Shown piece after piece: positions 30,381-61,885 of a stretch of 64,000 nucleotides of DNA. The translations under genes were made by a program, and so were the position numbers. The stretch's first letter is position 1. Each line of letters starts with the position of its first letter. This stretch comes from Lepidodermella squamata (taxonomy: Eukaryota; Animalia; Gastrotricha): assembly GCA_047495785.1 (NCBI GenBank), contig JBLDXI010000002.1, forward strand, positions 992,001-1,056,000, written 5' to 3'. Below the pieces are notes generated by a model. That model was not told the DNA's origin, searched no databases, and saw only the letters and a program-made list of their open reading frames with translations.

Positions 30381-32717
30381 TTTCAGGGTTTCAGATGGAT
30401 TGAAGGCAAATAAGTGGCGCGTACTTCATGATGAGAACGGCTTACGGGTAGATTTCTGAAGCAATGGAGCAATTCGTTCTCCTTGTCAAGGCTAAATCCT
30501 AAATCAAAGCGCAGCTTTTTAGAGACAAATCTTATCTGCTCTAGGTATTGAAATTCAACACTTAATTGGTATCCAATAGATATAGACATTCTTTGCTTTC
30601 AAATTTTAAATGGAAGAAAAAAGCTAAAACAAAGCTGTCAAAGCAAAATGAACCGCTATCACTGCGCCGTAGTCGTACCGTAGTCGTTAGCGTCGTTGAA
30701 TACAACTCAGATTCGGGCTTGTTCACGTCAGTTACAGACAGTTGACGGGTGACAAGTTTGCTTCCCTCTTCGTTCACATAAAAACTCTGCTATCACCTTT
30801 TACTTGTCACTGACGTAACCTTGCCCAAATCAGAGTTATTCAACGACGCTAACGCTCCCATATCTGTGGCTTATCAATTTGGTTATCGTTAGTTAGTTAA
30901 TTAGTTAACCAATGGAGTATCACCGTCATCGATTCTTGAAAAGTATTAGTTCATTTCGGTTTTAAGTGATAAATTTTCAGAACACTTTAAAGACCTCTTG
31001 TTTCCTAATTCAAAGATTCAGCCGCCGAAATTTCCAAAGGGGAGTTCTACTTTCAATAACATTACATGTGCATGAATATCATTCTATAATTTTTCGTAGA
31101 AATCAGAGGACCTTTTAATTTAGAATGGCTCGTTTCTAAAATACGTAATAAGAATTCATTAAAATCTTATTGCACTTTCTCTCGCAGCTATTAAAGTAGC
31201 AAAGTACATCCTATTAGCTGCTGTATTAAATTCTAAATTCTGCATTGTTGATAGGGTTATTATACCTCAACTTTTACATGAATTCGGCACTCGAGTTATA
31301 GCTGATCGGATAAAGATTGGATATTGGATATTGATTGTGTATCGGAAAAGGAAAATTCCGGCATAAGGTCGCTACTAAACTATTGCAGAGTGCTGGCTCT
31401 TTCGATATATTCAACCTGTTATCGCCATTTCTGTTAAACAAAGTGTGATGAATTATTCTCTTAGTTTCATTTCCTTGATTCGTTTTCAATTATTTCGCTG
31501 CATTGAAAATAAAGATTTACGGCACCGAGTCACGGATAATAATAGTATTTCATTGGTCACGGCAGCTCGTTTTTCCTCCTGTAAAATCTGCAATCTAAGA
31601 ATTCCAGAAGAACGCGAGAAAACTTGGAAGAATTATAGGCGAAAAAGCTGAATTTCTCTTATCTCTTCAAGAGTCCAAGAACGCACTATAGCAATCGCAG
31701 CTAATGGCAATTTTATAGCCCTTGAACCAAAGATAGTAATTTGGGATGCAACCGCTCCGCAGTTGTAAACAACCGCAATATAGCGGTATAATGATGTATA
31801 GAAATATGCGCTAGTACTGGCGGTCCCTTACGTCGCAACACGAACGACTTGCCCGGATCTTCATTCGCTATGCTACGTCCAACCTGTTTTATAAAACTGT
31901 TTCCAATTGTATCCAGCACGAATTTCAGCACCTAACCAGCACTAATTTTTCGCACTATCCAGCACGCGTGCGATTTATCCAGCACCATTATCCAGCACTA
32001 GTCCCTAGCCATGACCGGCACGCATCCAGCACTGAATCCAGCACTAAAAGCACCAGTGCTGGACAGTGCAGGAAAAGGCCTAATTGAAAGGGAAAAACGA
32101 GGCGGCGGTTCCGTGACCCGATCTCGGCACCCATCCAGCACATGTGGCGGCAAACCCTGTACACCACCGGATTCACTGTATCAAATGTGACGGTTTTGAA
32201 TATAGGCCAAAATCGCGGTTTGCGAAGCCGATATCGACACGATCGGCGGCGAATTTGGGCAGCGGCCGCTGATAGTTTGTACAGAATTTTGAGGGCTATC
32301 CGCCGATATACGATTTATTGACCGGCGATACTTGGTTCGCGCTGAAATTGCGTGCAAAGTGAGTCAACTGGGCGTGCAAAATCCAAACGCCATTCGTATT
32401 TTTTGTGTGTCACACCTGATTCTCAGAAATGTTGACTCTGCCTGCTTTGAACTATCGTCCAGCACGCGCTCACGACTTTGTCAATTTTTGTTAGCTGTTT
32501 GAGTCCATTTTCAGGATCTTCATCCGGGCTTTCCCCAGCAAAAATGTACCTTCGTGATCTAAAGGAATCGAACCCTTCCACACCCTGGCTGAACCACTTC
32601 TTTCATGTTCTTCCCATTTGTGCTACGCATGCATTTTCAGTCGACATGGCAAGATATTGCCTTTGCGCGAAAATGAAGTTATTGACTCAGTTCACCAGCA
32701 CTGACTCTTGTTTAATA

Positions 32718-32813
32718 CCGTAGTTACCGAAATAGAAGCCTAGGCGGCAACCATTTGTCGGCACTTTGATGTTCTCTGTAGTGCCGCCCAGGCTTGTATT
32801 TCGGTAACTACGG
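32718..32813. mobile_element. 96-bp hairpin MITE (Tc1/mariner-type, TA flanks)
   Basis: ~32-nt TIR CCGTAGTTACCGAAATAgAAGCCTaGGCGGCA with TA on both sides. Confidence 0.8.
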
Positions 32814-32944
32814 TATTTGCAATAATTAAAAAGCTGCAAGATCAGAACCACTGAGAGATCTTTTTATTCAACTCATAATGTTAAATGGAGGACGCAGAGA
32901 GAATGCCTCTAAAACTTTACAACAAAGAAGAGATTCCCATGTGA

Positions 32945-35900
32945 TCAATGGGATGACGCGCGCCTACATAAACCTAGTGAGCAGTTTGCGGTGTTGGCGC
33001 CGTGTCTAATCAGCATTTTCACCATGTCACTAAATCCAAGCTTCGCAGCAAGAATCAGTGGTGTTTCGCCGTTTTTATCCGCAGCTTCAATATTGGCTCC
33101 ACTATCTAACAACACCTTCGCAACCTTAACGTGATTCCCAAGAACGGCTTTAGCTAAGGCTGTGAAGCCATTGACATCCTTCACATCGACCGTCGCTCCG
33201 TTTTCCAGCAATAACTTGACGACATCGACGTGACCATTCTCACTGGCTAGCATTAGAGGCGTCAAATTTTCCAGTTTGCTCCTAACGTTAGTTGACACGC
33301 GTTCGACGAAGAAACTGACGCTATCCTCATCTCCCTGCATTGCAGCGATCGCAATCGGTGGTAGGCCACGGCCTGTTTCGACCTTCTCAAGCGGGGCTCC
33401 GGCGTCAACCAAAGTTTCGATGACTTTGGCACTGCTCTTGCAAGCCAGAGCTTGGTGTAAGGCGTTTGATCCTTTCAAAACCAACCCATTACACGTGAAT
33501 TCTTCGTCATCGAGCCACTCGGGATCGAAATGAAGCCCGCCCTCCCTCGCCATCAGCAGGTTTTTCAGCTTACCAATGTTGTCAGTATACGCAGCTTCAG
33601 CAATTTCACGTTGATATTCAAAGTTGGCCTGAAATGGGAGTCAATAATAAAAAACACGAGTTGAGACCAAGTGATAGTACCTTTGATCGGTGAATGCATT
33701 TCGCATCGATAGTAACGCTGCCGTTTTGACAGAATACAAGGCCGCTGCCGAAGAGAACGTGATGATCAAAGCAAGTGACTCTTCCTGGCTGATTAGGACC
33801 CAAAAGCGTCACAGTGCCATTTTCGACTTCAACTATGCTTAATTCGCAACCAGATGTCGTTTCGAAAACTGGCGATCTGTCATCTAAAAACAATATCCAA
33901 TCAATCACGATCAAATGATCCAGAACATTTGTTGGGCATATCAAATTCGGCAATGAGGAATTACCTAAATGCTAAGTGGAAATAGGATCCTCGAGGTGGG
34001 GGTACGCTTGGGTATTTTCAGGACCGGAATCATAAGTCCAAAGAGTCCCCCCGTGGTTTTTTGGGTTTTCTTGCCTGGACCTCTCGAATTGGGGGTACGG
34101 TACACCCCCCTACCCACTTACTTCGCTCAATGTTAATGCTTACCTTTTGCTACACAGCTACCCGAAACCTGCCAAGTCAACTTGTTTCTATGTCGAACAC
34201 AAACAGCACTGCCTTCCCCTTCCAGTTCGAAGCCTTCAAGGCAAGAAAATGTCCGATTTGACGACACATTGTTGGAACCCTCGCTGAAGAACCCATCAGC
34301 AACAGAAGGCTCGGGACATTCTTCTATTTGAAAAAAAAACGCAGTCTTAAAGTTATAATTGATAGAAAAACATAGATTCAGTGCCTGGGAGAGCCTCGCA
34401 AGTGGCCATAGGGTAGGTCTTTATCCAAGCCCCGTTATGGCACGTCATTTCGACATGGCCGCGGAGAGACGCAAATCCAGGCTTGCACTTGCCAAATCTT
34501 CGCGCCTGGTCGTTACTGGGACCCTTCCTAATCACAGCATTTTCGAAAATCGGCTCATCCTTGCATTCAATTATAGGGGCTGCAACTAAACATTTAAAGA
34601 ATACTAAACTGAAACAAGCGAAGTTACCTTTTTCGCGTTTCAGCCTCGTACAGTAACCATTAACCTGCCAGCGGCCTTTCTTGCTACATCTGACAAAACT
34701 GGAGCCAAAAAGCTTGAAACCGCGGTGACAGACAAGCTTAGCTAGTCGATTCGCATCGACCTTCGCAACCACGAAGTCCGCATTCGGCAGCTCCGGCAAT
34801 GACCCGCAGTTAACAGGCCTCGCATCGATACAAACGGTGTGAGAGCAATTGCTGGCATCGGCACCGTGTATGATCAAAACCCGAAGTATCGCCCCGTAAC
34901 TGCCTCGTTCGGCCTTGGTCACAGCTGTTTCGCCCAAGTTATCGACATCGCTAACATTCGCGACCTTCTTCAACAGAAATTCGACGATTTCGAAATTTCC
35001 ACGGCCAGCAGCTTGCATCAGAGCTGTCTCGCCAAATTTCGTTCGAATGTTCAAATCAGCGCCTCGATTTATCAATTCCTTAACCACAGGAAGGTTCTTC
35101 GACTTCGCTGCAGCTTCGAACAGAGGCGTTGTACCGTTCTCCGTCAACAAATTGACATTCGCCCCTTTACTAAGCAGGTACTTCACTATGTCAAGTTCGC
35201 CTTGGTAAGCCGCGATAGTCAAGGCAGATTGGCCGAAGTTATCGACTTGGTCAACTTTGATTGTCTTGGTCGACAGAATCTTTTTGACAATGTCGAGATT
35301 GCCGAACAGGGCTGCCATCATCAGAGCACTTTGGCCGTAGTAAGGGTCTTTTAGGTCCGGGTCAGCCTTGGAGAACAGCAAGTTGAAGGCGTTTATATTC
35401 TCGGTTTCAATAGCTGCCAAAATCGCTGGCCAAGATACAGACACGTTGTGGTTAAGCAATTGAGCTGCTATGCCGAGCTTGTTGAAGTAGACAGCTGCCG
35501 ACAGCGGGTCGAAGCCCTGGACGTCTGTGATTGTTGCATCGGCGCCTTTTTCTAGCAGGTATTTGATGTCTTTCGGCTGCTGATGGCAGACTACGGCCCG
35601 CATTAAAGCTGTTCCTCCGATGAGGGACCATGGGCATTTGCTGGTTGATGGAATTTCGTCGATATCTCTCCAGTTGATGTCGACGGCGTTGGTGGCCAGA
35701 ATGCGGTCGATTTCGGTTAGATTTGCAGTAGCAGCGGCTGTTCCGAGAGCTCGATGTAGTAGCAAACAGTTTTCAACGTCCTTTTGGCATTCGGGGTAAT
35801 CTAAGGGATTTTAGAAAATAGAGAAAAGAGGAACTTAAGATTCAGCGTCAATTATAAGCCATTTAAAAACCCTCGGACAAACCGAATTTCGGAAATTTCA

Positions 35901-38900
35901 ATCGGTAAAACCAAATTGGTTAAAAAGACTAGGCGAAATCGTCAATAATTGAAATAAATGGCGTTTTAATTTTCATTTTAAGGCCTAATCATCGAGTTGA
36001 AAGCGAAGTTCATTCATGATTAGAATTTAAAATTTAAAATTATTGCCTTATCGAATTTGCTGGCAAAAACATGAAACAAGGGTTCGAAAGCTCAGGAAAC
36101 CTTGTAAGTCCTTAACCTTAAATCGAGCTAATAAAAATAGGGAAAGACTCAAATTCGAAGCAGCAAATTCGATAAGGCAAACTAATCTCAGCCTTCTAGA
36201 TGAGATATGATTCTTACTCAGATTTATGGCAGAATATTATGATCAAAATATATGCCGAATAGCATTCCTTCCGAATGTTTCTCTTAATTAATATGATAAT
36301 TAGCCAATTGAATTTTCCGGTTGCAGTGGAACGGAGCTTTTAGGTCCCATTTTGGGTAGAAATTTCGAGTTCGGAGGTTGGAACCCTTCAAGGTTTCAAG
36401 GTTTATACAAATGGGCTTGGATTCGAGATTCTGAGAGTTTTTATAATTACAGCCCGGAAAGCCTCTCGGCTAAAGGCATAAATTCGGGCGAAATCTAGTA
36501 GCGAAATACAGTGTGTCCGTCAAATAATATGAGCCTATATATAGCATTTTAATTGCGCCTGTTCACGAGTCGTGCACGAGGCAAAAAAACGAAGCACTGA
36601 ATGATAGTACAGCTATTGTTGTTCATTGCTGGAAAAATATCAATTATTGCTCCGCCAAAATTTGTATTATTTAATCAAGATAAAGAACATTCTTCGGAAC
36701 GAAAGCATTAGCTTCGGGATTTTCACCTGCAAGGTTTGTACATTGCTAAAGTTTTGGGGACAACGAGTTGCCCTGAATATTCATGCAATAAGATCAAACG
36801 CGCAACAATGTCAACCTAATATCTGGAAAAAATATAACCATTTAAATAGCAAATTTTCTTATCCAATTCAGTTAAAACTGTTTGTACTAGCCATTGGACG
36901 TATTCTTGCGGGTATGTGAAATTCACGTATATAACGGTTAGCCGATAGCGCCCCGGATGCTACACAAATTGGCGAAAGCGACATTACCCCTTTATTTCAA
37001 AACGCGGAACTCATTTCAAACAGATTACCAGGTCGTAATGGAAACTGCTTTAGTTGCTTTCATTGCATTTGTTGCATTTGTTGCTTTTGTTGCATTTTAT
37101 GCTTCAACGGCAGTTATTAAATTAGACATGTAAGATTACGAAAAAATTTAGAAAATGTCCCGCGGCTGTTGAAGACCCAAGTCGATGGGCAAGTCGATGT
37201 ACGCGAAAAAGGGGAAACCCGATTCCAAAAAAGCGGTTTGTAAAACTGGCCATGGCCGAATTCAAAATGGCCCTTGCAAAACAAAAAACTGAAACGGCTC
37301 AGGGAGAAGATGGTGATGACGGAGATGAACCTGATAATTAAGATAATTTTTAAAGGCGCGGCTCGTTAAGAGGAAAATATTAGCATTCCTGATGGTCAGA
37401 ACATCACCTTCTCTATCACCTGAAAGAATTAAGACGAAGAAAGTTTAATCATCAACACTAGCTGATGCATACAAATTTTAACTAGCAGTAGTAAATAAAG
37501 CTTTCGATTTCATTGACGTATTATTTTTTGCATCTCATGAAAAAAATGAGACGCCAGATCTGGCACGCGCCACGCTTGCTGTTGCTTTTGGACTATAAAT
37601 AGCCTCATATTATTTGACGGACACACTGTAGTAAAATCAATCTTTCCAGTGACCAACTTTAGAAAACTTATTGCCCAAATCATAACAAAATCTTCCTACC
37701 TGGCAGGGTGTCAGTAGGCTGCAATTTTTCTTTATTCGAGCAGATAGCTAAACATTCGGCTTTGGAATTAAATCGATTAATCACGTTGGCACAGCCACCG
37801 TAAGTGAACGGCAAACATTCCTTGGTATCAGAGTTGTAGTAGTAACTGGAAAAAATACGTCAAATAATCAGTATGTATTATTTATAAAATGGATACCTTG
37901 GAATGCTTTGGCCGCAATCGAATATGTTTGCTTTGTCTGGATACCGGAATCCCAAGCATTTTTCTGTCAATTATCAGCCTTAATAAAAATTCCCTGTAAT
38001 TTAGCGAAAATTCTCACCCGCGTCTGATTTGAGGTTCGGATAGCAAAGAATGTGATAGCAGCCGCTGTGATCGGCACCAGCTTCCAACAACACTTTCATA
38101 ACATCTTCATCGCCAAGATTATCTGCAGCCATCAATGGCGTATTCCCATTTTGATCAGTAACATTAGGATTAGCACCTTTTTCGAGCAGAAACGACACAG
38201 CCTCGCTTTGATTGCACAGAACCGCCGACATTAGGGCCGTAATGTTGTAAACACCCTGGAGGCAGGTCAGTGTATCCTCGCCAGATTCACCCTGCCAGTT
38301 GATGTCAAGATAGCCGAGGTTAAGCAGCTCTTTCAGGTCGCTTATTGAACCTTCTGCAGCGTTTTTGATCAAGCTTTGTTGGAACAATTTAATCTGGATC
38401 GATTACAAAAATCATTTAAAATATTTTAATTTTCGAAAGTTTACGTTTTCTAGGCTAATGCATTGAGCATTGTTATAGTTCCAGGTTCGATCTGTCCCAC
38501 ACGTAGCGGTGTCGGATCCGATCAATTTGAACCCATCCATGCATGAAATAGTTCGGTTTGACCCGATTTCGGACAAGCCAGAGGCAAAAACAGCATTTTC
38601 CAGCACAGGTTCAGACAGGCAGGCATGAGTTACTAATTGAAAAAAATTATTTTTGGGGGGTTTTATCGAGAATTATTAAAATTACTCAGAGCCTTTCCGA
38701 CGCAAAATCCGGCGATTTTCCACTGTTTCTCCTCTGAACAAACGATTTCCTTGGAACCAACAAGCTCGAAGTCCTTGTCACAAATAATCTCGCCAATTGA
38801 ATTTTCGAATTGGATTTTCGCATTTTGAAGGACAGGAGCCGTACCACATCGAAATTCGACTACAACAAAAAATCCCGAAATTTTCAAAAGAAATATTGAA

Positions 38901-39745
38901 ATTAATCAATTACTCATCCTGTCTTCTCCAGCCGTAGTTTGAGGAATTGAAGGTTGTTGGGTTGAAGAAATTTCCCAAACTTTTTCGGTCGAGACTTCGG
39001 GCTTTTCAGTAGTAGAAGACTGTTCCGTGGTCGATTCATAAGAAATCGCCTCGGCTGTAACGGTAAAACCAGCCGTTGAAGTCCAAGCCGGAGTTTCCGA
39101 CCAACCTTGACAGACCATAGGCGAGAAAATTTGCGACCAATTTCCGTCAGGTTGGCAGGTAGCAACGAGCAAATCAGCAGGGATTGAAGCTCCTTGTTTG
39201 CAGACAACTCTGATTTGAACACCGGTTCGAACCTGGTCCAAAGAATCTCCAATCGGTTGCCATTGATCCGTATCGGGGGGTTTGAGTTCTATCGAAGCGC
39301 TGTCCAGGTGAGGAAGATGACACGCCAATTCTTCAGTTATCAAATTTTCTGCGATCTGAATAAATTAGTCATGTTATTCAAATGTCTAATAAAATATTTT
39401 TAATTAATTCAATTAATTCAATTAAATCCCAGAATGTTTCAAAATTTAAAATTCGATTAGCTAGTTCATCCTAATAATTTCCAATATTTTTAGAAAAATT
39501 TTGAACCTCCATCCTTGGGGATGAATTCTCCTTGGGACCTCGTGGTTTTAAATTTTAAATTACCTCCAATTCTGTCCCATCTCCGCTTCCTCGATTCTGC
39601 TCCAGGATTTTCACATTTATTAGCTGCAAAACGGAAAGAAGATAGGTTCCAAGTCCTTTCTGCATGTTTTTACCTGATCTTCAGCTTCAACGATAACGAA
39701 TAGCAACAAGGAAAGTGGTAAAAATGTAATTAGAAAATTTGTCAT
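32945..39745 (-). CDS. Sushi-ankyrin gene F: SP-CCP-S/T-rich-CCP-CCP-ANK-Kunitz-ANK-CCPx4-ANK mosaic
   Basis: ATG 39745 MTNFLITFLPLSLLLFVIVEA. Junctions are phase-compatible, one needing a GC donor at 34384. Ankyrin blocks at ~38394-38018, 35800-~34830 and 33628-32945. Ankyrin-to-CCP fusion is visible inside a single ORF (34353-35765). Confidence 0.78.
36509..37628. mobile_element. Non-autonomous Tc1/mariner-type element in gene F intron
   Basis: 25-bp perfect TIR CAGTGTGTCCGTCAAATAATATGAG with TA on both flanks. Confidence 0.9.
37700..37963 (-). other. Kunitz/BPTI domain exons of gene F (not in ORF track)
   Basis: Two exons give KCLGFRYPDKANIFDCGQSIPSYYYNSDTKECLPFTYGGCANVINRFNSKAECLAIC, with six Cys and FxYGGC / NRF motifs. 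Confidence 0.9.
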
Positions 39746-40088
39746 GATTTAAAAGCATGTGTCTTATAATTTTGAAACAAGAAAAATAATGACTAATTCT
39801 GAAATTTCATTTTCATTAGGGCTAATACGAGTCAGATGTCGGATGAAAGTCGCGTGCTCACCTTGAAGGCTGTATACACAACGTGATTCAACCTAGTCCC
39901 AACTGGCCTCGAAACAAATACGCCGTAATTCAATTAAAAAATTATTACACCACTCCTTATTTTATTAGGAGTTCAAAATAATCGCAAGGCAGCTGTTTAC
40001 ATAAGGCAATTAAAATTTCTTAATAGATTATCACAGCATAATAACATGGAAAAAAATGATAAAATCAAACGCGGAACAAGTTCAAAAT

Positions 40089-43000
40089 TCAAAAGTGCAG
40101 CTCGGCATCGTGCTCTTCCAGCAACTCATCGTCAGCCCAACTAACTGTAGCCGGGTCCACAATGGCCGCTGAACTGCTAGGTCGAGATGAGGATGCATTT
40201 TGAGGCAGAGAGCCACTTGTGGCGGTCGGAACTTGAGTCCCATGGGCAAGATGTAGAAATACCTAAAACAAAAAAGGAGTAAAAATGTTTGAAATTATGA
40301 AAAGTTTAAAATTTAAATTTTAAAAGTTGAAATTTTCAAATTTCAAAAAAATAATCTTCAAAATTAAATTCAAATTCAAAATTCAAAATTCAAAAAATAA
40401 TTCTCAATTTATGAAATTTTAAAAATTTTAATTCAAAAATTGAAAAATTTAAAAACAAACCGTGTCAAGCGTGTTTTGAGAGACTGAAAAATCATCGATT
40501 TGATGCAATAATCGGAGTCCAGAAAGCATGTCAAAAATGCGAGCCAAGTCCGGCCGCGTTTCCGTCAGCGCCAGCTCAACAATTTGATGCCGCTGCGCTA
40601 CGAAACGCCACGACCCCGGCTCAAAACCCGCCTTAACAAAGGCCTGATTCAGCATTTCAACCGGCGAAGATGATGGCGTTGAATGCCGTGACGGGAGTCG
40701 AACTGTTACCATGTAGCCATTGCCGTATTTATCCTTCAGTTGTTGGGTACTACCCAGGCAGCGTAGTTTCCCAGCTACCATAACGGCTAATCTCGAACAC
40801 AACACCTCACATTCCTCCATGCTGTGGGAGGTAAGGACGACTAATCGATTCTCGGCACGTAGCTCTAGGATCAAATTCCATAAAAACCGCCTGGAACCTG
40901 GGTCCATACCGGTTGTAGGCTCGTCGAGTAACACCACGCTAGGGTCGCCTAGCAACGCCAAAGCGGCCGATAATTTCCGCTTCGTTCCACCCGAGTAGGT
41001 CCGGCTAGGTTTATCGGCATGTAGTTCCAATCCCATCCTTTCAATCAGCCAAGCTACAATACCTGGTTCCAACTCGGGTTTTATACCCCGGATTCTAGCG
41101 AAAAATTCCAGATGCTCCCGCGCGGTTAATTCCTCGAGTAATGGGTCAGTTTGCGGGCAGAATCCGACGTGTTGGAAAATTCCTCTCGTCGGACCGCCAA
41201 CGCCACATAACTGGCCATTGCCCATCCTCGCCTCGCCAGCGGTTGAGTTGAAAATTCCGGAGAGCATGGAAAAAGTTGTCGATTTTCCAGCCCCATTCAG
41301 GCCTAATAGCCCGAAACATTCGCCGGGTGGAAGGCCGAGGCTTAGCCTATCAACAGCGAGGAGAGGGCCGTTTTTCGTCGAATACTGCTTAGTCAAACCG
41401 TCGAGAACCAGCAGATCGTTTTCAGTGTTGGCTGTCATGACGCGGTGGCGCTCTGCGATAACGTCTGGGTCTTCGTTTTCCGAGTTTCGAAGGCTGGGTG
41501 GCGTCCAGGATCGCCGCTTTTTCGCGTCGTTTTTGCATGTGATTTCGATGCGGGTCAGCCATTCGATGAGAAGAGTTAGGCCGAAAAATAGGAAGCCGGC
41601 GATGAACATTGAGAGGTAGTTTCGCAGTGTTGTTTCCCAAGTGAAAGGCGACGTGATTTTCTCGTTTTGACCTAAAATTGGAAACCATTGAAAATTAAAC
41701 CAAAATTCCAATTTTAAAATTGTATTGAAATTCAAAATTTTGAAATTTTGAAATTTTAATTTTAAAATTTTAATTTAAAATTGAGTGCATTTCAAGAGTT
41801 CATTTTTTTATTTTAATCTTAATTTTAAAAATTTAAAATTCATTTGAATTTTTTTTCAATTTTTTTTTAATTTTTCCAATTTACCTGATAAAGCGAAGAA
41901 TTCATTTTTGTAATGATTAATGGCAATATCCATAATTCCACGGCCGAGGCAGTAGGGCGGAAAGACGAGGAAAGCATTTTTCAGGAAAGAATTGGCTGTT
42001 TTTAAGGCATCTGTTGAACTGAACATGTCGAGTAGGAAGCTTGATATGAGGCAGGTCGTTCCTATGAATAAGTTGAACACAACAAGGAAAACATAGGCTT
42101 TGCTTGGATCGGTGAATTTCCACGACAGCGGGTACATCATCGGCGTCATAGACCAGCCGTACAACAGGAAAAGCAGGGTGATTGCTGCCAGGTTGTAGCC
42201 AGCAATATAAGCTGGAACTTGGAACATGGCTAAAACAACCTTAAATTTCGAGAAAAAAATAGAAAACAAATATTTAAAAAAAATACTGAAAAATTACGAT
42301 GCAAGATGCAGCTGGAACAAAATAATTAAGCAGGTCCCAGCAAAAATTAGCGATCCAATAAACAATAGGATTGAGCCCAGCCATTATCTGTGGGAAAATT
42401 CCGAAATTATGAAAATTTTATTTATTTATTTTTAAAATTTTTTTACCTGAGTTTGCTTGACTAATAGCGATCGCTCGTAGACCAAAAACACGACGAATGA
42501 AGCCGGGACAAAGGCCATAGCCGTAATAATGAAAATTGCGATAATCATATCGGTACCTTGCAAGCTGAAAATATTGAAACAATTCGATTGAATTTTCAAT
42601 TTTCAAATTTCAAATTTTTTAAAATTTTAATAATTTTTTTTTTCAACTTACGCCATATCTTGAACTTCGCCTCGGTCCGTACTGTTGATAGGATGATTGT
42701 AGGTGGTGATGCCATACGCCGCCGGATTTCCAAACCGCGGATTTTTCCCAACATTAGCCCGTAAAATCGCGTTATTCACCGAGTTGAGAAAAGCCGGCAA
42801 TGAGTGATAGCCGCGATGTTCTATGAAGTAATTAGCAACGTTTCGCGTTGCCAAGCGGCGCAGGTCATTCGTCGCGCCTCGGCCGAAATCAGCCGGCACT
42901 TGGTGGAGTTCGGAACCGAAGGCAATTGCGCCGTAGCGATGGCGCTTGAACTCGGAGCCGGTATTTAGCAGGTATTCAGTCAAATTTTGATTGCCGAGAT

Positions 43001-46000
43001 CGATTATGTAGTCACCGGTTACCAAGTTTAAACTATTTTAAAATTAGAAAAATTCAAAATATTTAAAATGAAATTCAAAAAAATTCGACAGAAAATGTTG
43101 GAAAATTTCAGCGGGATTTCAAAATCAAATTTAAAATTAAAATTTAATCAATGAAGCATTTTTTAATTTTTCAAAAATCCATTTAAAAAAATCACCGATT
43201 TTTAGAATAATTTTAAATATTTTCCATTTCAATATTAAAAATTTTCGATTTTTCAATTTTTTATTAGAATTTTACTAAATTTAAGAGAATTGTTTTAAGA
43301 GCAATCGTGATAATTTTTTACCTGGGTGGTCGCTGATAGTCATCGTCACACTCCACTCCGGAGCTATCTCGCGAACAGTGGCAATTGGGATAGAATTGCA
43401 AAGTCGAATTATCGAAAGCCGTATAACGCGATCTGCCAATAAATTCCTGCCCCATCTCCGAAATCTGACACTCTTCATTGAAGTAACGACTATCGTTCTC
43501 TTTCGATTTAAGCACACACCGAGCCGAAATGCCACTGGGCAGGTACAACGTAGCCGCCAACTCATTGGCACCAGCGTCGGGAGACTCAACTCCGGCTAAA
43601 TTAAGCTGGTAATTAACTATCGGCGTGAAAAGGCCGCGCGGTTGCGTTGCGTCGTAGTACTGCGCCGGCGACATGTCCAACGGTTCCGGGTCATCGAACA
43701 TCGGCGCCGACAGCGCCATGGACATGGCAATCGCCGCAAACAGCGCCGGTAGCACAATTTGCGAAATCAACACCGGAATATTTCGCCGCACAAAAAGCAG
43801 CCGCTTGATGAAAAGTGCGCGAAAATGTTTAAGGTGGGTGAAGCGTGTCCGCTCGCCACGCTGCGAGCCGATGCCATACACCAGCGCCTCCTTAATTTTT
43901 TGATAATTAATCTGCTCTTCACTAGCCGGCGGCTTTTCCGGCTGAGGTTTCGGCGAAATTCCGGCGAGTAAAATCGCGGCTGAGTCGTTTGAAGATTGAC
44001 GGTTGTGGCGGGAGGTTAAATTGATGATATCTGAGGTGTTACTGGCCTGCCGCGAGTGACCCCGCCGCGTGACAAAAGTTCGACCCTCCTCACATTGAGC
44101 TGTTCTCGTAATTCGCAAAAACGCCTCCTCCAGCGACGAGTCGAACACGCCGAAGGATGAAAATCCAACCGTGTCCAATGAAGCGTTAAGTTGCTTGAAA
44201 AATTCGGCAAATTTCGCCTGATCGGCATACGGCAAAATGAAATGTAGCTCCAATTTTGACTCAGAGTACAAAAATGCTGATGGCAAGAATTTTTTCATAA
44301 AATCAATCGCTTGACCTAAGGAGCGCCTCGTCACGCTTGACCTAACACCGACTAAATGATACCCGTCGCAAAATGTGTTTTTCAAAAAAATCGACGATCC
44401 GCAACATTTGAGCCGCCCGTTTGAAATAACGGCAATACGATCGGATAACACGTCAGCTTCGTCCATGTGATGCGTGGATAATAGGATGGTCCGACCCTGT
44501 TTATACCGGACGATCAAGTCCCAAATAGCCCGGCGTGAATATGGGTCAACCCCGGCTGTAGGTTCGTCGAGAATCACCAACCGTGACCGGCCGATAAAGG
44601 CTAGGGCTATCGATAATTTTCGCTTCATCCCACCCGATAGCTGGTTAACCGGGGTCGAAGCCTTCGCAAAGAGGCCGACATCTTTCAGCATGGAATCAAT
44701 GTCCTGTTTCGAGTAGGATCGCTTTAGCCCTGAGTAGAATTGAAGGTGTTCTTCTGGCGTTAAATGGTCGAATAAAACGTCATGCTGCGGGCAAAATCCG
44801 ACTGAATTTCGGATCAAATCGAGATTTTTCGCTAAATCGAGGCCGTAGACTCGGACTGAGCCGCTTGTAGGGGGTAGAATTCCAGTTAGAATGGACATGG
44901 TTGACGTCTTCCCAGCCCCGTTATGGCCGAGTAACCCGGTTATTTGCGACTCGTAAAGCTTGAGAGATAACGAATTAACAGCGACTTTTCCGGTTTTTCG
45001 GTAAATTTTCGTCAAATTATCGATTTCAACTCCAAGAGGGAGTGTTGTCGGATCGCGTTCGAAATGTCGAGCTGGGTTGACTTCATCGCCGGGTATCAAA
45101 CTGGGTTGGTCTAGGTTAGGAGGTTGAAATCGCTGTTTCGTGAAATTTCGGATGATTTGAACGAGTTTGGCGAAGAAATTCGGCATTTCGTACTCGTCAT
45201 CACCAGGCAGGCCAGTCCAGAAAGTTTTCGTGAACGGGAAATACCACGGTTTTGGGACACCGAACGAGCCAGGGTGAACCTAAAAATTGAAAAAATCCTC
45301 CTTAAATTGTTATAGAATTAACAAAAATTAAACACAAAATAAATCCTCAAATCTGGCTCTCCAAATCCCGATTTAAAATAATTCTGTCAAAGTTAGGTTC
45401 AATTTTACAATAAAAATAAATAATGTTACAGTAATTCTAGAATTTTTATAATATTATTGAATTTTTTCCTAATTATTCAGATTTAGTAAAATTTTAAAAA
45501 ATCATAGCCTTAACAATCCGAAATTTCAAACCAATCTACAACGTGTCCCAGGGGAAAGCAATAGGAATGAATTTAAATAAAGGAGTCGGAAATTTTTCAA
45601 ATGATTTTCGGAAAAAATCAATTCTATCAGATTGGGATCAACTTAAATTTGAAAAATAAAAAATCCGGCGAAATTCGGGTAAAATACCGAAAATTACCAT
45701 ACGTGTTACCAAACGGGTTTTTCGGGATTATTTACCATTTCCTCGGTAAAATATCAGACAATAAATAGGAAATGCCCTGTGGATACCCAATTTAACAATA
45801 GATAAATCATTTTTTTTCGCAAAAAATGGCGAGCTCGAAAATTGGTAAGGGGCACGCAACAAATATTCTAAATTATTTCAATAAATCCCTATTTCAGAAT
45901 ATTACGATCCAGGTCAAGGTAGGTATTATAGGATTTTACCAAAATTTTACGATTTGTGTTACCTGTTCGATGTACCAAGCGAGAACAGCATACAACAGCG

Positions 46001-48873
46001 AATCCGCGGCCAAGTAGGCGAATGAATGTAGCAGCGTGAATGAGTCATGCTCAATAGGCGATAGGGCTAGATTGTCCCATTGAACTCCAATACCCTCAGC
46101 TTCCCGCAACGAGATATACTTGCAACTCAAGCCAAAGGCAGATGTTGAAAATAGGCTAGCAAAGTGTTTCAACCAAACTGAAATATCCCCACCCGAGACA
46201 TCTTCTCGAATTCCGATGCACATCGATGGTACGTAGGATAGCAAATACAGCATTCCCGCAGTTGCTGAGGCGATTTTCGCCTTTGAAAACAGCGAGCTGA
46301 TTAAAAATGCGAAGGTAATCGTCGCGACAGCGTAGGATTCGAGCATTAGCCAAATGATGAGAGAATTGCTGTGAACGAGAACTTGCGAGTAGCGAAGGAC
46401 CAGGGTGACTACGGTCATTGAAACGGTTAGCTGAGCAAAGGCCGTTATGAACCAAGCCAGGCCGTGCATGGCGTTGCTGAGGCCCATGATTTTCATAAAT
46501 TCTTTAAGGCGGCGTTCTTTTTCAGACACGATATTCTGGGCAAGAATTGCGGCTGGATAGACGAAGCTGATCGTCATACAGAGTGGCAAGATCAAGCTAA
46601 AAAAATTCGAAATTGCAAATTATAAAAAAAATGAAAAATTGAAAAAATCAACATTAGATTAAAAACCATTGAAAATTCGAAAAATCCAATTTTTTTAATT
46701 TCAAAAATTATTGCAACCAAAAATATTTCTAAATTAAATTTTCAACTTCAATTTTCAACTGAAAATTTTCATTTTGAAAATTTCCGAATAATAATTACCT
46801 GTTCGTGAAAAGAAAAATATCGTAGAGGTAGCACGGGTGCGGAAAAGTCGTGGAATAAGTCCCAGGTTCGATCACATCACGGCCCATTATTACATCGATA
46901 ATTGATCGATCAATTAACTCTTGAAGGAAGCTGAAACCAGTACTAAAAAAATATTGAATTTACGGATATTTTCCATTATTGTTTTAAAAATTACAAGTAG
47001 TAGTAATAGTCCCAATTTCTCGGCAACGGTGTCCAATAAATCGGCCGAATGCGGCGAACACTTGGCAAGAAGGACGAATTCATGCGAATTTTGTACGTCA
47101 CATGAGGCGGCAAATCGGCGTAATTTTCAGATTCGTTCAATTTGAAGGCAACTATCGCTAAGACGCTGACATTTTCACGAGTAGCCTGGCCTAATAGCGA
47201 ATATTTAACGGCTTCATCTTCGCTGCGGAATGGCATGAATATCGACAGGTTGGCTGAGGCAGTGAGGTCGGCAATTGAACACGCGACTTGATCAACTCGG
47301 TCGAGTTGCGTGAGCAGCTCCGGGGCAGTTGGAATTTTCATCTTCAAAAACGGTTCAAGGACCTTTCGACTAACATTGAGAGACGATGATAGATTCGAGT
47401 CATTTTTCAGATAATCTCGGAGCCAAAGTTGGGTCTGCATAAAATTTAAAAAATTTAAAAAAAAATCGAAATTTTTTCAAATTTAAATTCAAATTTAAAA
47501 AATTTCAAATCATGAATTTTCAATTTTTAAATTTCAGAAATATTTACCTGATTTATGGCTACCAATTTTTCCGCAGTTTCAGGCCTCGAAAAAATTCTGC
47601 GCAGTTCAACGCTGGTGTTGGCCAGCCAAAATCGCGAAAGATCCGCAATTTTCTCAATCGCTTCAAACGTTCTATTCGCCTTTTTCATGACCAACTCAGC
47701 GCTGCTGTTCGATGGGCTGAATAGGATTCTCGGCTTCGATCGCAAAATCTTCTCCCAAAACGGGCGATATTGATCGCCGAAATCATTGCCACTTTTCACT
47801 GTTCCATTTGTATCGGTGAATAGGACAGCGTCGTTATATTGGGACGCGTTGGCGAGAAGCTGGGTTGGGCATAAAACCGGTTGTAAAGCGCCGAAAATTC
47901 GCATTAATTTAGCTGGTAAATCAGGCTTATTAGCGGTACTATTTTCCGATGTGGCATTATTCAAGTGCGGATGGTGGCATTGTCCAAGATTAAAAAATTT
48001 AGACAATGCTGATAGTTCGTCCAACGCAGCGTGAAAAGCCGCAAATTCAGCCAGCTTAAAAAAATTCAAAAAATTCAATAAAAACATCCGATGGATCCGA
48101 ATTACCTTTGCGAATGCAGCTTGGCCGTTATTCGAAAAATTAAACCCAAGATTCGAAAGCTCCTGAGCAAGTTGGAAATCTCGATCCGGAATTGTCCCAT
48201 TATTTGGAAGTAGATGCTCGAAATCTTCGAGGTCTCTTACCCCGATTGAAAAATCGCGACCAGCTTGACGTTTAATCCGTCGTTTTTCCACCGTTAAATT
48301 TGTTAATATTTGATTGAAATTCGGCGTGGCTGCTGCTTGGGAAAGAAAGTCCAAGTTGCTATCGTATTTTTCACCGAGGTTTTTCAAATCTAACGACGAT
48401 TGAGCTGGGTAATACGTGAGAAAGTCCCGATAGGCAGTATCAAGCCGGCTCAGCCATAAATGAAGCCTGAAAAATTGACAGGTGCACTCGGGCAGGGCGT
48501 GCTCAAATTACCCCGCACTTACGTTGAATTTTCGTCGAGCTGAGGCAAACCATCGTCGCCCAACGGGAAACCGGGTAGGCCGCTGCACATGCCTTGTAAA
48601 AATTGTACAACTCCGGCAGATGGCATGGCTAGTGATCGGGATGTATGAGCCGCTGTCGCTTGTGGAAGATTGTTGTGGCGAAGTAGGGCGAGAACAGCAA
48701 ATAGTACGAAAGGCAGAAAAGTCTCCAACAACAATATCACCTTTTAAAATTTTTAATAAATTTTTAAAAATAAATTTTAAATTTTGGGAATTGAAAGAAA
48801 TATTTACAGGAAGTCGCCGTTTCACCAGGAAATTTTTCCATAGCAGCAACTTGAGCTGGTGAAGATTTTTCAT
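40089..48873 (-). CDS. ABCA2: ABCA-subfamily full transporter, ABCA2-like
   Basis: Start [14 protein letters not shown]. Two NBDs ([23 protein letters not shown] and [23 protein letters not shown]). [29 protein letters not shown] resembles ABCA2. Last exon 40262-40089. Confidence 0.88.
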
Positions 48874-50472: not shown

Positions 50473-51884
50473 TCATTGCAAATCAGGGCAGTTTTCAAAG
50501 TCATGACCAGGTTGATTGCAGTTCCAGCACAGTGTTTGACTCGATAATTGCCGATCAAATCGTTTTCGCTCTTCAATAGCCGCCGATAATTCGGCATCAG
50601 TGTTAACAACAGGCCTGCTGTAGTGATCACCCATAGCCGGTCTTATATCAAACGGCGAATAATTGTTATCGTGATCTCCATCGTCATAAACAGCCATTTC
50701 GAGTTTACGCAGGTACTCGGGTTCGATAGTTGACGGTTCCAGGTTGGTACTGCTGTTACCGATTTCTGACTCTGATCTCGCTGATTGGATCCTTTGAAGT
50801 CGGCTGGAACCCCGCGAGGCTGTTGCAGATCGCGGCCGAGGTGGCGGTGGTTCTCGTCGTATTTCAACCTCGGGTTCCACCGCTGGTACCAGCTTATGAA
50901 ACTTCCGAAACCGAACATATTCCCGCATTAAAAATCGTAACATTCGATGGCTGTTGAATTTCCGCGCTAGATCCAGCGCTGTCTCGCCGTGTGCCCGGGA
51001 TTTTTGGACAAAAAATTGATATTTTTCAGAATCACCCTTAACAGCATTAAGGAGGATTTTCGCAATATCAGCGTGGTTGTGCCTCGCCGCTGTATGAAGC
51101 GCTGTTTCGCCATTTGAATTCAAAATATAAACAGCTTGGCCGCGAGTTGCTTCAATGATAAATTTCGCAGCTTTCAGACACACATTCCCGGTTTCAGCGG
51201 TTAAATGAAGCGCAGTTTGACCTGAACTCCCCACTTTTTCATGAGCCAATATATCCACGCCGCGTTTTGCCAGTAAATAAAGCGCGTCGATATTGCCTGA
51301 TTTCGCGGCGCAGTGAAATGGATTACGGCCGTATTTATGGTCGATCGATTGGATTTCGGCTCCATTTTCCAGCAAAAGTTGAATTAAGCGAGGTTTGTTG
51401 CTCGGGAATTCTTGGCTACACGCCCAATGTAGTAGGGTGAAACCGGTTTCATCACAGGTATTTGGGTCTAAGTTCTCGTGTTTCAACAAAATTTCGAGCA
51501 GATTAAGACCGTTTTCTCCACCTCGTTCAACCGCTTTTACGATGTTTTCGAAGGCCTGAAAAATATTTATTAAAATTCAGGCTAATTAAAATAATTTAAC
51601 TCGCTAATTTCGGCTTTATTGCTGTTTGATAGCGATCGTCCAAGAGCTGTTCAATTAAAATTGAATTTATTTTTTAATTTTTCAATTTATTTTACCTTCA
51701 CACGAACAGCTGCTTGAGCCTCAATTTGCCACGACGTATATTTCGGCAATTTGAACTGTGGATTATCCGGGTCATTCAAGGTCTCGAAGATCATTATAGA
51801 CGACCTGTCGCCTCGAGGCCGATATTTTCGGGGGGTCGATGATCTCGAAGTGTTCGGCGCGCTCATAGATTCGCTAATTTCCAT
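50473..51884 (-). CDS. Cytosolic ankyrin-repeat protein with C-terminal CCHC zinc knuckle
   Basis: Ankyrin motifs (GFTLLHWA, GRNPFHCAA, GQTALH, GETALHTAA). CWNCNQPGHDFENC = CX2CX4HX4C. No signal peptide. First exon from 51884. Confidence 0.8.
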
Positions 51885-59583: not shown

Positions 59584-61885
59584 TTAATAATCTCCTTCTT
59601 CGGGATCAGCTCGTGGCTTAGAAGACTTCTTCGCAGGTTTTGATTTCATCACGGGCTCTTCCTCAGGCTGCTGAACCATTTCCATCAGCTTCCGGCTAAC
59701 TGGAGCTCGCGTCACTGGCTTGAACGATTGGTCATTCATTTTGAAAATCTTCTCGCGAGCCAGCGTGAATTTGGAGATGACGGATTCAAGCTCGAGACGT
59801 CGAGCAATGCTTGCCTCATCCTCCATGAACAGACGGTCCCTTTCATCCGCGTCAACGATACGCTCGGTCCACAGTTTCAGAAGGCGGGGCATCAACGTGT
59901 CACAAACTGCTTCGATCATGTGCCGGGTTACTGATTTCACCATAGCTGAGACCATGGGATCACGAACTCGATCCGTATACCGAACAGCAATATTGCCTGG
60001 ATTGGAAATTTCGTAAGGTTGTTGGAAAATGTTTTCAAAATAACTTACGGTATGATGCGACCATCGCTGGGGTAATACGGCTGATGCCGTCCTTCATCAA
60101 AGAATTCTCCTCGAAATCATCGCCAGCATCTTGAACAGTTTCGACCTCGTTTTCACTACTGGAGTCGTCAATATCCTGGTCCTTGTCATCGCCTGCTTCA
60201 CCAGCGACGGGTCGGGGTTTTGTCAACGCTGCAGGTCGTGCTGGCTTTAAAAATGGATTTAGAGCTCGGCTTGCAGATGGGGATATATCTGCTTTGTTAT
60301 CGATGACATCGTCTTCCTTGCGCAATTCGTCAAGATTGATGTGCGCCTGTTGCACCTCTGCCAGTTCTTTCGTGGCCTTCAAAGCCTTGGCCTGCTCCTC
60401 GTCCAAAATATCCCGAGTCATTTTCATAATCTCGCCAGACAGAACCGGCAGACGGTGCATGTTTTGCTCCAGTTCCTCGTGAAGATCGATGCATTGACTG
60501 ACTTCGTTCAACATGGACTGGTGAACAGCCCGAACACACTCACGGCCGACTGATACGAAATTTTCCAGCATGAGTTGGACGATCCGTTTGCAGGCTTCGT
60601 CTTTGAACGTTGCTTCGCCAACAACACCGCTAGCGTTGGCGATGATTGTTTGAATCTGTTCTTCAGTCAACTCGAGGGCAAGTTGTCGAATCCTGGCTGG
60701 GAGGGCGTTATTGAAGAGCTCACGAATTGGCGTTGAAGCCGTGACTCTTTTAGACACTTTCACTTGATTACCACTGGTTCGAGCTGTTTTGCCAGTTATC
60801 GCGTATTGGTAGGCCTCGGCGTAATCTAGGGTAACATCTACAGCTGAGTGAAGGTAGTCTGCAACATCACGAGTTTCGCCCAACTCTTCTCGCTCCTCTC
60901 GATAGGCAGACAGGCGTAGATTGATTTCTTGGATGGTTTTCGGGGTTGCCTTAGCGATTTCCGTGCGCAGAATCTTCACCAGAGTTTCAGCAAGGACCTT
61001 AGATCCATGTTTCTTGGCCAGCGCCGGGTTATGGCCGAGGGCTTTTTTCAGCTTAGTTTCCTCAGCCGACCTTGCTTTATCGAGTGGCACGGCTTCGTCC
61101 AAGTCTTCTTGCGATCGATTGATAACCCCGACAATACCGCGTTTCGCGACCAAATTCTTCTCTTGCAGCATCTTTTCCAGAGTTTTCGGGTCGACCTTAT
61201 CCAGGTGAGTCAGAACCATGAGAGTCCTTTCGCCGGTGGGGTCGACACTTCGAGCGATTTGAATGGCTTTATTGGCCTTGTAGTCATCATGGGCCGCATG
61301 GACTAGCACGATTATCGTCTCCGGGCTGCTGATATACTTCTTCCACATCTTTTCGACGAAGCTCGACACATCGCGATGAGAAGCGTCGTCGAAAATCAGA
61401 CCGGGCAGATCGACGAAGGCTAGCGGCACTGTGTTTCTGATGTGAAGCTCCATTGAGATTGGATTATCGGACAAGCCTCCCTTCGTTGCTGGCGCTAACT
61501 GGGCTGATATTTCCATGAGCCTTTCAGCAGTTTCAACTGCTGGAACTTGCTCGGCCTGTTTAGAGGCGACCCCTCGCTTATCGACCACTGAATACTCGAT
61601 TTTCGCCCAGTCTTGATCGCTGAATGGGCCTTTTTGCTTGCCGCGTTCGAAGATTTTGATTTCCAACGGACTTTTCGTAGAGGTTTCTCTTCCCTTGGGC
61701 AGAATTTCGAGGCCGATGAGAGTTTCGACGGTTGAAGATTTGCCATGGCTCTGCAGACCAATGAAGACGAGTCGAGGTGTTTTGATGGCCTTGAAATCCT
61801 TCTGGAAATGGTCGTCGCCCAGCTCGTCCAATATGGCTTGGGCTTCTGTGAAGGCACTCAAACTTGCGCTACTAAGTTGAAGCAT
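59584..61885 (-). CDS. Divergent dynamin-superfamily GTPase
   Basis: G1 GLQSHGKSS, G2 Thr (TSTKSPLEI), G3 DLPG, DPTGERT, G4 THLD, GVINRSQ. Middle domain, acidic insert and GED-like C-terminus joined by a 52-nt phase-1 intron at 60048-59997. Confidence 0.9.

Follow-up and report, generated by a model that had tools for sequence, protein, structure and literature searches.

Organization of locus F

The window analysed here, a 64,000-nt stretch of the genome of the gastrotrich Lepidodermella squamata (assembly GCA_047495785.1, contig JBLDXI010000002.1, positions 992,001 to 1,056,000 of the forward strand), carries on its minus strand, at 39745-32945, a mosaic locus, here called F, in which extracellular-type modules alternate with ankyrin blocks. 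The order of modules, each backed by Pfam, by alignment with a local gene family or by fold, is signal peptide, complement control protein (CCP, or Sushi) module, serine/threonine-rich (S/T) linker, two CCPs, a first ankyrin block (ANK1), a Kunitz domain, a second ankyrin block (ANK2), four CCPs and a terminal ankyrin block (ANK3). This is the order claimed in the original prediction, and a Pfam scan recovers Sushi, Ank and Kunitz_BPTI in that sequence on the minus strand. The predicted 13-exon model is fully in frame (3960 nt, 1319 aa), and F is probably, at roughly 55%, a single transcription unit whose only promoter and signal-peptide exon lie at 39745 and whose only poly(A) site follows 32945; the locus itself is a mosaic, probably lineage-specific, assembled from units of a local secreted CCP-ankyrin family.

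All exons of F and its poly(A) signal lie on the minus strand. Exon 1 (39674-39745) bears the ATG and a strongly hydrophobic signal peptide (MTNFLITFLPLSLLLFVIVEA|ED) ahead of the donor CAG|gtaaaa, and exon 2 (39564-39623) is a 20-aa spacer of phase 0-0 with good splice-site scores and no homology support. The first CCP (CCP1, a family-specific first module) shares exon 3 (38914-39355) with the S/T-rich linker, which is mucin-like (65 aa, 35% Ser+Thr), while CCP2 in exon 4 (38686-38859, phase 1-1) and CCP3 in exon 5 (38445-38632, phase 1-0) are recognized by both Pfam Sushi and a family hidden Markov model (HMM). ANK1, in exon 6 (38018-38393), consists of an N-cap with a Trp and a Cys pair, two repeats and a C-x4-C cap, and is followed by a candidate donor, CGG|gtgaga, at 38017; if this donor is unused, the open reading frame (ORF) stops at a TAA (38003-38001). 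The Kunitz domain is divided between exon 7 (37897-37963; Cys1 and Cys2), preceded by the weak acceptor gacag|AA, and exon 8 (37700-37845; Cys3-Cys6), whose donor CAG|gtagga is in phase 1 and whose frame, if unspliced, ends at a TGA (37685-37683). Exon 9 (34628-35800) is entered through a phase-1 acceptor and encodes ANK2, with about nine repeats and an extra N-terminal Cys pair, together with CCP4, as identified by Pfam and AlphaFold2 (AF2). It is followed by exon 10 (34385-34579; CCP5), with the non-canonical donor CAG|gcactg and an unspliced frame ending at a TAA (34355-34353), exon 11 (34144-34323; CCP6, from Pfam Sushi and the family HMM), exon 12 (33681-33883; the divergent CCP7, phase 1-0, from alignment and fold) and exon 13 (32945-33628), which encodes ANK3 with its C-x4-C cap and the stop TGA (32947-32945), identified by Pfam Ank_2 and alignment. 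A poly(A) signal AATAAA (32863-32868) lies 79 nt past this stop.

Introns 1 to 12 measure 50, 208, 54, 53, 51, 54, 51, 1899, 48, 61, 260 and 52 nt, so that nine of the twelve fall within 48-61 nt, around the family mode of about 52 nt. Intron 11 (33884-34143), at 260 nt versus about 52 nt, is unusually G+C-rich (45%) with runs of G and C and is probably a small insertion. The long intron 8 contains a 1124-nt element (36507-37630) with 38-nt terminal inverted repeats (95% complementary) beginning TA-CAGTGTGTCC, which looks like a non-autonomous Tc1/mariner-like transposon and has no second copy within the window. Rfam and tRNA scans of 32000-40500 returned nothing.

Identity of the modules

Among the seven CCPs that had been claimed, five are firm, one (CCP1) is marginal, and one (CCP7) is recognized through alignment and fold alone. 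Six segments of F reach at least 20.7 bits, the gathering cut-off of Sushi (PF00084): the matches at 39364-38909 (CCP1), 38905-38666 (CCP2), 38672-38415 (CCP3; E 8.5e-8) and 34420-34136 (CCP6), and two further matches that share a single ORF (35810-34356) with Pfam Ank. CCP1 scores precisely the cut-off value, and its likeness is to the first module (59076-58801) of a short family gene within the window. An HMM built from the CCPs of neighbouring paralogues detects CCP2 to CCP6 (CCP3, E 7e-13; CCP6, E 6e-22). CCP7 (33883-33681) has no Pfam match; its four Cys align in register with those of the family CCPs, and the conserved Trp, present in CCP1 and in CCP2-6, is replaced by Val. Its AF2 model has a pLDDT of 80 and matches factor H CCP19-20, DAF and C6 CCPs in the PDB with TM-scores of 0.55-0.69; nearly all of the top 50 PDB matches are CCP modules, with E values never below 3e-3, and the input alignment of the model consisted of CCPs, which biases it toward the CCP fold.

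The ankyrin blocks are all recognized by Pfam: ANK1 by Ank (E 3.5e-14; 38402-38004) and Ank_2 (E 1.5e-12), ANK2 by Ank_2 (E 4e-60), and ANK3 by Ank_2 (E 7e-43), with Ank matches at 33640-32948. Every module of F has an even Cys count, and the model contains 16 N-x-S/T sequons. The signal peptide read from the ATG at 39745 is the sole hydrophobic stretch of the 1319-aa model (the next-best window of 19 aa averages 1.46 on the Kyte-Doolittle scale). The ankyrin blocks thus stand amid extracellular-type modules with no transmembrane span, which supports the earlier argument that blocks flanked in this way could be cytosolic only with such spans.

The Kunitz domain is found by Pfam in exon 8 alone (Kunitz_BPTI, PF00014; 37859-37683, E 2.2e-12), and its first third, at 37963-37897, is separated from it by a 51-nt GT-AG intron. 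The spliced domain has six Cys, of which Cys2 to Cys6 are canonically spaced (x15-x7-x12-x3), whereas Cys1 and Cys2 are separated by x13 rather than the canonical x8. The closest solved relatives are SmCI (best PDB match, E 3.9e-19), TFPI and boophilin. The P1 residue after Cys2 is Gly (FDC-G-Q), not the basic residue that inhibition of the trypsin type, though not membership of the Kunitz family, requires, and canonical trypsin-type inhibition is doubtful because of this Gly and of a Cys1-Cys2 loop longer by five residues. No other Kunitz domain was detected when segments of F were compared by tblastn with the 64-kb window.

An ankyrin-CCP fusion within one exon

The nine-repeat ankyrin solenoid encoded in exon 9 (35800-34628) runs straight into CCP4. 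The ankyrin part ends in ...HGADASNCSHTVC, with only seven residues between its C-x4-C cap and the first Cys of CCP4, so that no intron can fit at the fusion. The uninterrupted frame reported earlier (35765-34353) is present, and its passage from ankyrin into CCP lies in one exon, which makes the fusion independent of any splicing model. The same frame does hold a probable in-frame intron of 48 nt (34627-34580; AAAG|gtaact...ttgcag|CC) between CCP4 and CCP5, which leaves the ANK2-CCP4 junction untouched. For the 390-aa product of exon 9, AF2 predicts (mean pLDDT 91.2) a solenoid of about nine repeats with a beta module behind it, the paired helices extending over residues 64-310 at a pLDDT above 90; the product's matches among AlphaFold Database clusters are ankyrin proteins and cover the ankyrin portion only.

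The phase-1 acceptor of exon 9 lies 21 nt upstream of a phase-0 AG and fits the phase of the Kunitz donor, unlike the ankyrin exons of the family, which are entered in phase 0 (in F, exons 6 and 13). Use of this acceptor adds seven residues to ANK2, bearing one Cys of its extra Cys pair.

A local CCP-ankyrin family and the origin of F

Comparison of segments of F with the window by tblastn, together with stop-to-stop translations, identifies a tandem family on the minus strand. The window has a G+C content of 38-49%, and its domains of metazoan type and its introns, about 50 nt long, are those of an animal-type genome. Units 1 to 4 lie at ~6520-3972, 17290-14016, ~22049-18515 and ~27110-23757. 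In the canonical unit, a signal-peptide exon precedes between six and nine CCP-like exons in phase 1, and a single ankyrin exon of about 340 aa closes the gene; this exon finishes with C-x3-5-C, then a short tail of S/T/P that includes a PxL motif, then the stop. A short independent gene at 59200-57806 (minus strand) is reduced to a signal peptide (MIAKIGIIIALIGICASS), one CCP-like module and a 179-aa ankyrin block ending in C-x4-C and a stop, with AATAAA 106 nt downstream. No transmembrane segment was found in any family unit of the window. In the alignment of the ankyrin blocks, a Trp and two N-cap Cys are invariant (8/8), and C-x3-5-C follows the last repeat in six of the eight; the three blocks of F have both the N-cap and the C-cap features.

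Two irregular members were observed. At 6865-7674 (minus strand), a family-type ankyrin exon with the invariant Trp and Cys pair ends in ...NEEC-stop, and no signal-peptide or CCP exon was found upstream of it; it may be a truncated or rearranged unit beside unit 1, whose own signal peptide lies at ~6520. In unit 1 itself, the ankyrin ORF stops at 3972-4000 (minus strand) as ...IASGA, without a C-x4-C cap, while an overlapping frame continues (...GGLAEKLSC...), and a frameshift or an extra small intron may account for the end of this gene.

F resembles the family in its signal peptide, in the phase-1 CCP exons upstream of ankyrin and in the lack of a transmembrane span. It differs from canonical members, where a single terminal ankyrin exon is followed by the stop, in having three ankyrin blocks, two of them internal, and it is unlike any of them in its Kunitz domain, in the ANK-to-CCP junction within an exon and in its shortened ANK1 and ANK3. 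ANK1 is a family ankyrin exon that has lost an internal portion and kept the N-cap, the last repeats and the C-x4-C...PxL tail; ANK2 is of full length. Within F, only ANK3 has the arrangement of a terminal ankyrin block, a stop and AATAAA at 52-106 nt; ANK1 has a stop without AATAAA, and ANK2 continues into a CCP. Among the last CCPs of canonical units, the second and third are the counterparts of CCP5 and CCP6, which are 42-54% identical to the matching CCPs of neighbouring paralogues, the highest value being that of CCP5 with the CCP of unit 4 at 26391-26167 (54%).

These recognizable parts of family units, namely the ANK1 tail with its stop and the CCP5/CCP6 identities, support the earlier proposal that F arose by fusion of several units, together with capture of a foreign exon pair encoding the Kunitz domain. 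The TAA after ANK1, which intron 6 bypasses, would then be the remnant of an ancestral gene end.

One transcription unit or several

The assignment of F to one transcription unit draws on its starts, its ends, the state of its distal exons, intron lengths that mostly lie near the family mode, and junction phases that fit throughout, including the match between the Kunitz donor and the phase-1 acceptor of exon 9. Only one start with a signal-peptide exon was found at F, and a search of the 1.9-kb gap upstream of exon 9 gave neither a signal-peptide candidate nor a family-exon remnant; exons 9-13 have no start ahead of the conserved N-cap and yet form an open frame of about 810 aa with Pfam E values down to 4e-60. 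The Kunitz exons, which begin 38 nt past the TAA of ANK1, are intact and have no ATG or signal peptide of their own, so that their expression would be possible only through splicing from exon 6. At the 3' side, F has a single canonical poly(A) signal; AATAAA occurs 52-106 nt past the stop in six family genes, ANK3 of F included, against a background of 4%, while none is present within 267 nt past the TAA of ANK1, and neither AATAAA nor ATTAAA within 233 nt past the stop that ends read-through of the Kunitz exons (TGA 37683).

Several observations weigh against this assignment. When a splice-site matrix trained on 22 family introns was applied to all 12 junctions of F, the three weakest were the inter-unit joins, introns 6, 8 and 10. 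For intron 6 (ANK1-Kunitz), the donor CGG|GTGAGA scores 6.5 bits, equal to the median of the family, and its hexamer recurs at 25431 in unit 4 as the donor of an intron modelled at 55 nt; the acceptor of intron 6, gacag, scores -1.1 bits, at the 46th percentile of all AG sites, i.e., like a random AG. Intron 8 (Kunitz-ANK2; 1899 nt) has a donor of 3.7 bits and an acceptor of 2.6 bits. In intron 10 (CCP5-CCP6), the acceptor reaches 4.9 bits and the donor CAG|GCACTG only -1.0 bits, below all 22 training donors; the homologous site is GTAA in all four paralogues compared, the 30 other junctions modelled with GT donors all have GT, and a search for alternatives gave no GT-AG pair for this intron that preserves both CCPs. 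The donor looks like a recent mutation. Furthermore, ANK1 retains the tail of a canonical gene end with an in-frame TAA, the gene at 59200-57806 is short and independent, the 1.9-kb gap has the size of the intergenic spacers of the cluster, and no self or orthologous protein of F was found in the collections searched. Use of the three inter-unit junctions is a prediction of the gene model, and the full 1319-aa product is less likely than not as a main isoform; shorter products ending at TAA 38001, TGA 37683 or TAA 34353 may be made alongside.

Taken together, the same observations could describe separate genes, a possible but rather unlikely arrangement in which exons 1-6 form a short gene (signal peptide, three CCPs and ANK1) ending at TAA 38001, while exons 9-13 are a duplicate truncated at its 5' end, with neither promoter nor signal peptide, that is to say, a young pseudogene that is still open; the Kunitz exons might optionally extend the short gene on its 3' side, up to TGA 37683, and the GT-to-GC change in the donor of intron 10 would be the first visible lesion. 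The canonical tail and stop of ANK1, the weak inter-unit splice sites with the one GC donor where paralogues have GT, and the gap of intergenic size, whose transposon bears ATTAAA and AATAAA motifs, agree with this arrangement, and the gene at 59200-57806 shows that short independent genes of such a type exist, so that exons 1-6 could stand alone. Nevertheless, exons 9-13 share only 25-54% identity with the paralogues of the window and remain uninterrupted over about 810 aa, with good GT-AG introns besides intron 10 and a canonical poly(A) signal. Such diverged but open exons argue against long decay as a decapitated copy and are hard to square with long neutral decay, so that the truncation would have to be very recent. 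The lack of AATAAA at the family's usual distance past the ANK1 stop and the presence of intact Kunitz exons that are untranslatable alone also speak against separate genes.

The weak donor of intron 10 also bears on the product of a single transcription unit, since its score below every training donor and the GT found at this site in all paralogues would fit retention of the intron, which reads only ten codons before TAA 34353. The main product would then be truncated after CCP5 (signal peptide, CCP1-3, ANK1, Kunitz, ANK2 and CCP4-5; about 975 aa), with CCP6-7 and ANK3 left in the 3' untranslated region. This is improbable: exons 11-13 are intact and have good splice sites, the GCACT of the donor equals the GTACT donor of intron 12 in F apart from the T-to-C change, GC-AG introns are a recognized minor class, and nonsense-mediated decay would be the normal fate of a message whose stop lies so far from its poly(A) site.

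Trans-splicing onto the acceptor of exon 9 was rejected, as the first in-frame ATG lies past the conserved N-cap and the product would consist of CCPs with no signal peptide.

Proposed product and function

With F as one transcription unit, a single primary transcript would be spliced to a 13-exon message for the 1319-aa protein. The predicted product would be secreted, disulfide-rich and N-glycosylated, with the signal peptide followed by CCP1, the mucin-like linker, CCP2-3, the short ANK1, the Kunitz domain, ANK2 fused to CCP4, CCP5-7 and ANK3. It may act as a soluble multivalent binder, in which the three ankyrin solenoids would provide binding surfaces, stabilized for the oxidizing secretory pathway by the conserved Cys pairs at both caps, and the CCP modules would serve as spacers and ligand-binding units; the cap Cys and the even Cys counts fit a life of the ankyrin blocks in that pathway. 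The Kunitz domain could be a protease-binding or a purely structural unit, given its P1 Gly and its longer first loop. Secretion, disulfide bonding and binding are all read here from the primary structure.

In eukaryotes, ankyrin repeats are known from textbooks as modules of the cytoplasm and nucleus, and the significance of F lies in the combination of the exon 9 fusion, the signal peptide, the lack of a transmembrane span and the Cys pairs at the caps, which constitutes sequence-level evidence for ankyrin export in an animal lineage. F is the most extreme family member in the window, with its three ankyrin blocks and captured Kunitz domain, and illustrates how the family diversifies: adjacent units fuse, and new splice sites come into use. 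Should cDNA confirm it, F would clearly exemplify exon and unit shuffling while still under way, and would offer protein engineering an ankyrin scaffold of interest that is naturally stabilized by disulfides. The divergence among the tandem paralogues suggests a recognition repertoire. More speculatively, and with a rather low likelihood, the full 1319-aa secreted protein may belong to a large undescribed animal repertoire of disulfide-capped, glycosylated extracellular ankyrin solenoids shuffled with CCP, Kunitz and other modules, an ankyrin-based system of extracellular recognition functionally comparable to the leucine-rich-repeat-based variable lymphocyte receptors or to designed DARPins.

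Other features of the window

Directly upstream of F, an ABCA-type transporter gene (40449-48400, minus strand) stops some 700 nt short of where F starts; Pfam finds ABC_tran twice, ABC2_membrane_3 and the ABCA1 R1 domain. At 50476-51576 (minus strand), an ankyrin gene of another type, presumably with a cytoplasmic product, lacks Cys caps and carries a long tail of low complexity as well as a CCHC zinc-knuckle-like motif (CWNCNQPGHDFENC). A single-exon ORF of 616 aa at 60035-61885 (minus strand) belongs to the dynamin family (Mx-like), and its best relative, in a Logan contig (ERR10802333), is only 62% identical, which points to a poorly sampled lineage. Between family units, a 306-aa ORF (11559-12479, minus strand) with a reverse-transcriptase domain (RVT_1, E 5e-13) is probably a retroelement fragment.

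Comparison with known proteins

A protein homology search with the 485-aa ORF that contains the fusion returned generic ankyrin proteins of at most 42% identity, with no self match among proteins of 267-849 aa, and a search limited to its CCP part gave no match. The exhaustive search of representative proteins was dominated by giant ankyrin proteins that score through their many repeats and contained no near-identical protein, and the ESM Atlas search returned generic ankyrin clusters. In the literature on extracellular or secreted animal ankyrin families, no description of a secreted CCP-ankyrin family was found; this coverage is incomplete, and an earlier description is possible.

The nearest published secretory protein found with both ankyrin and Sushi modules is RON9 of Toxoplasma gondii, a rhoptry neck protein with a signal peptide, six ankyrin repeats, one Sushi/CCP, PEST repeats and a C-terminal transmembrane domain (PMC3299665). 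Both RON9 and F combine an N-terminal signal peptide, ankyrin repeats and Sushi/CCP in one polypeptide, a likeness by domain types alone, and F is outside the RON9 family: it is an animal protein with many CCPs, a Kunitz domain and no transmembrane span, whereas RON9 is apicomplexan and has a single Sushi.

Few animal proteins with ankyrin repeats act outside the cell that makes them; the latrotoxins of spider venom, which are rich in such repeats, are one example. They are likened to F by description only, and unlike F they are pore-forming and lack a classical signal peptide and CCPs. F shares with factor H, DAF/CD55 and beta2-glycoprotein I tandem CCPs that span about 60 aa, contain four Cys and are encoded by phase 1-1 exons; however, the CCP strings of complement regulators include neither ankyrin nor Kunitz, and the CCPs of F stand in runs of one to four between ankyrin blocks, with no complement role implied. 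Similarly, the multi-domain Kunitz proteins (TFPI, bikunin, boophilin and SmCI) have the six-Cys Kunitz/BPTI domain in common with F, which differs from them in its single Kunitz domain placed between ankyrin blocks and in a P1 Gly rather than Lys or Arg.

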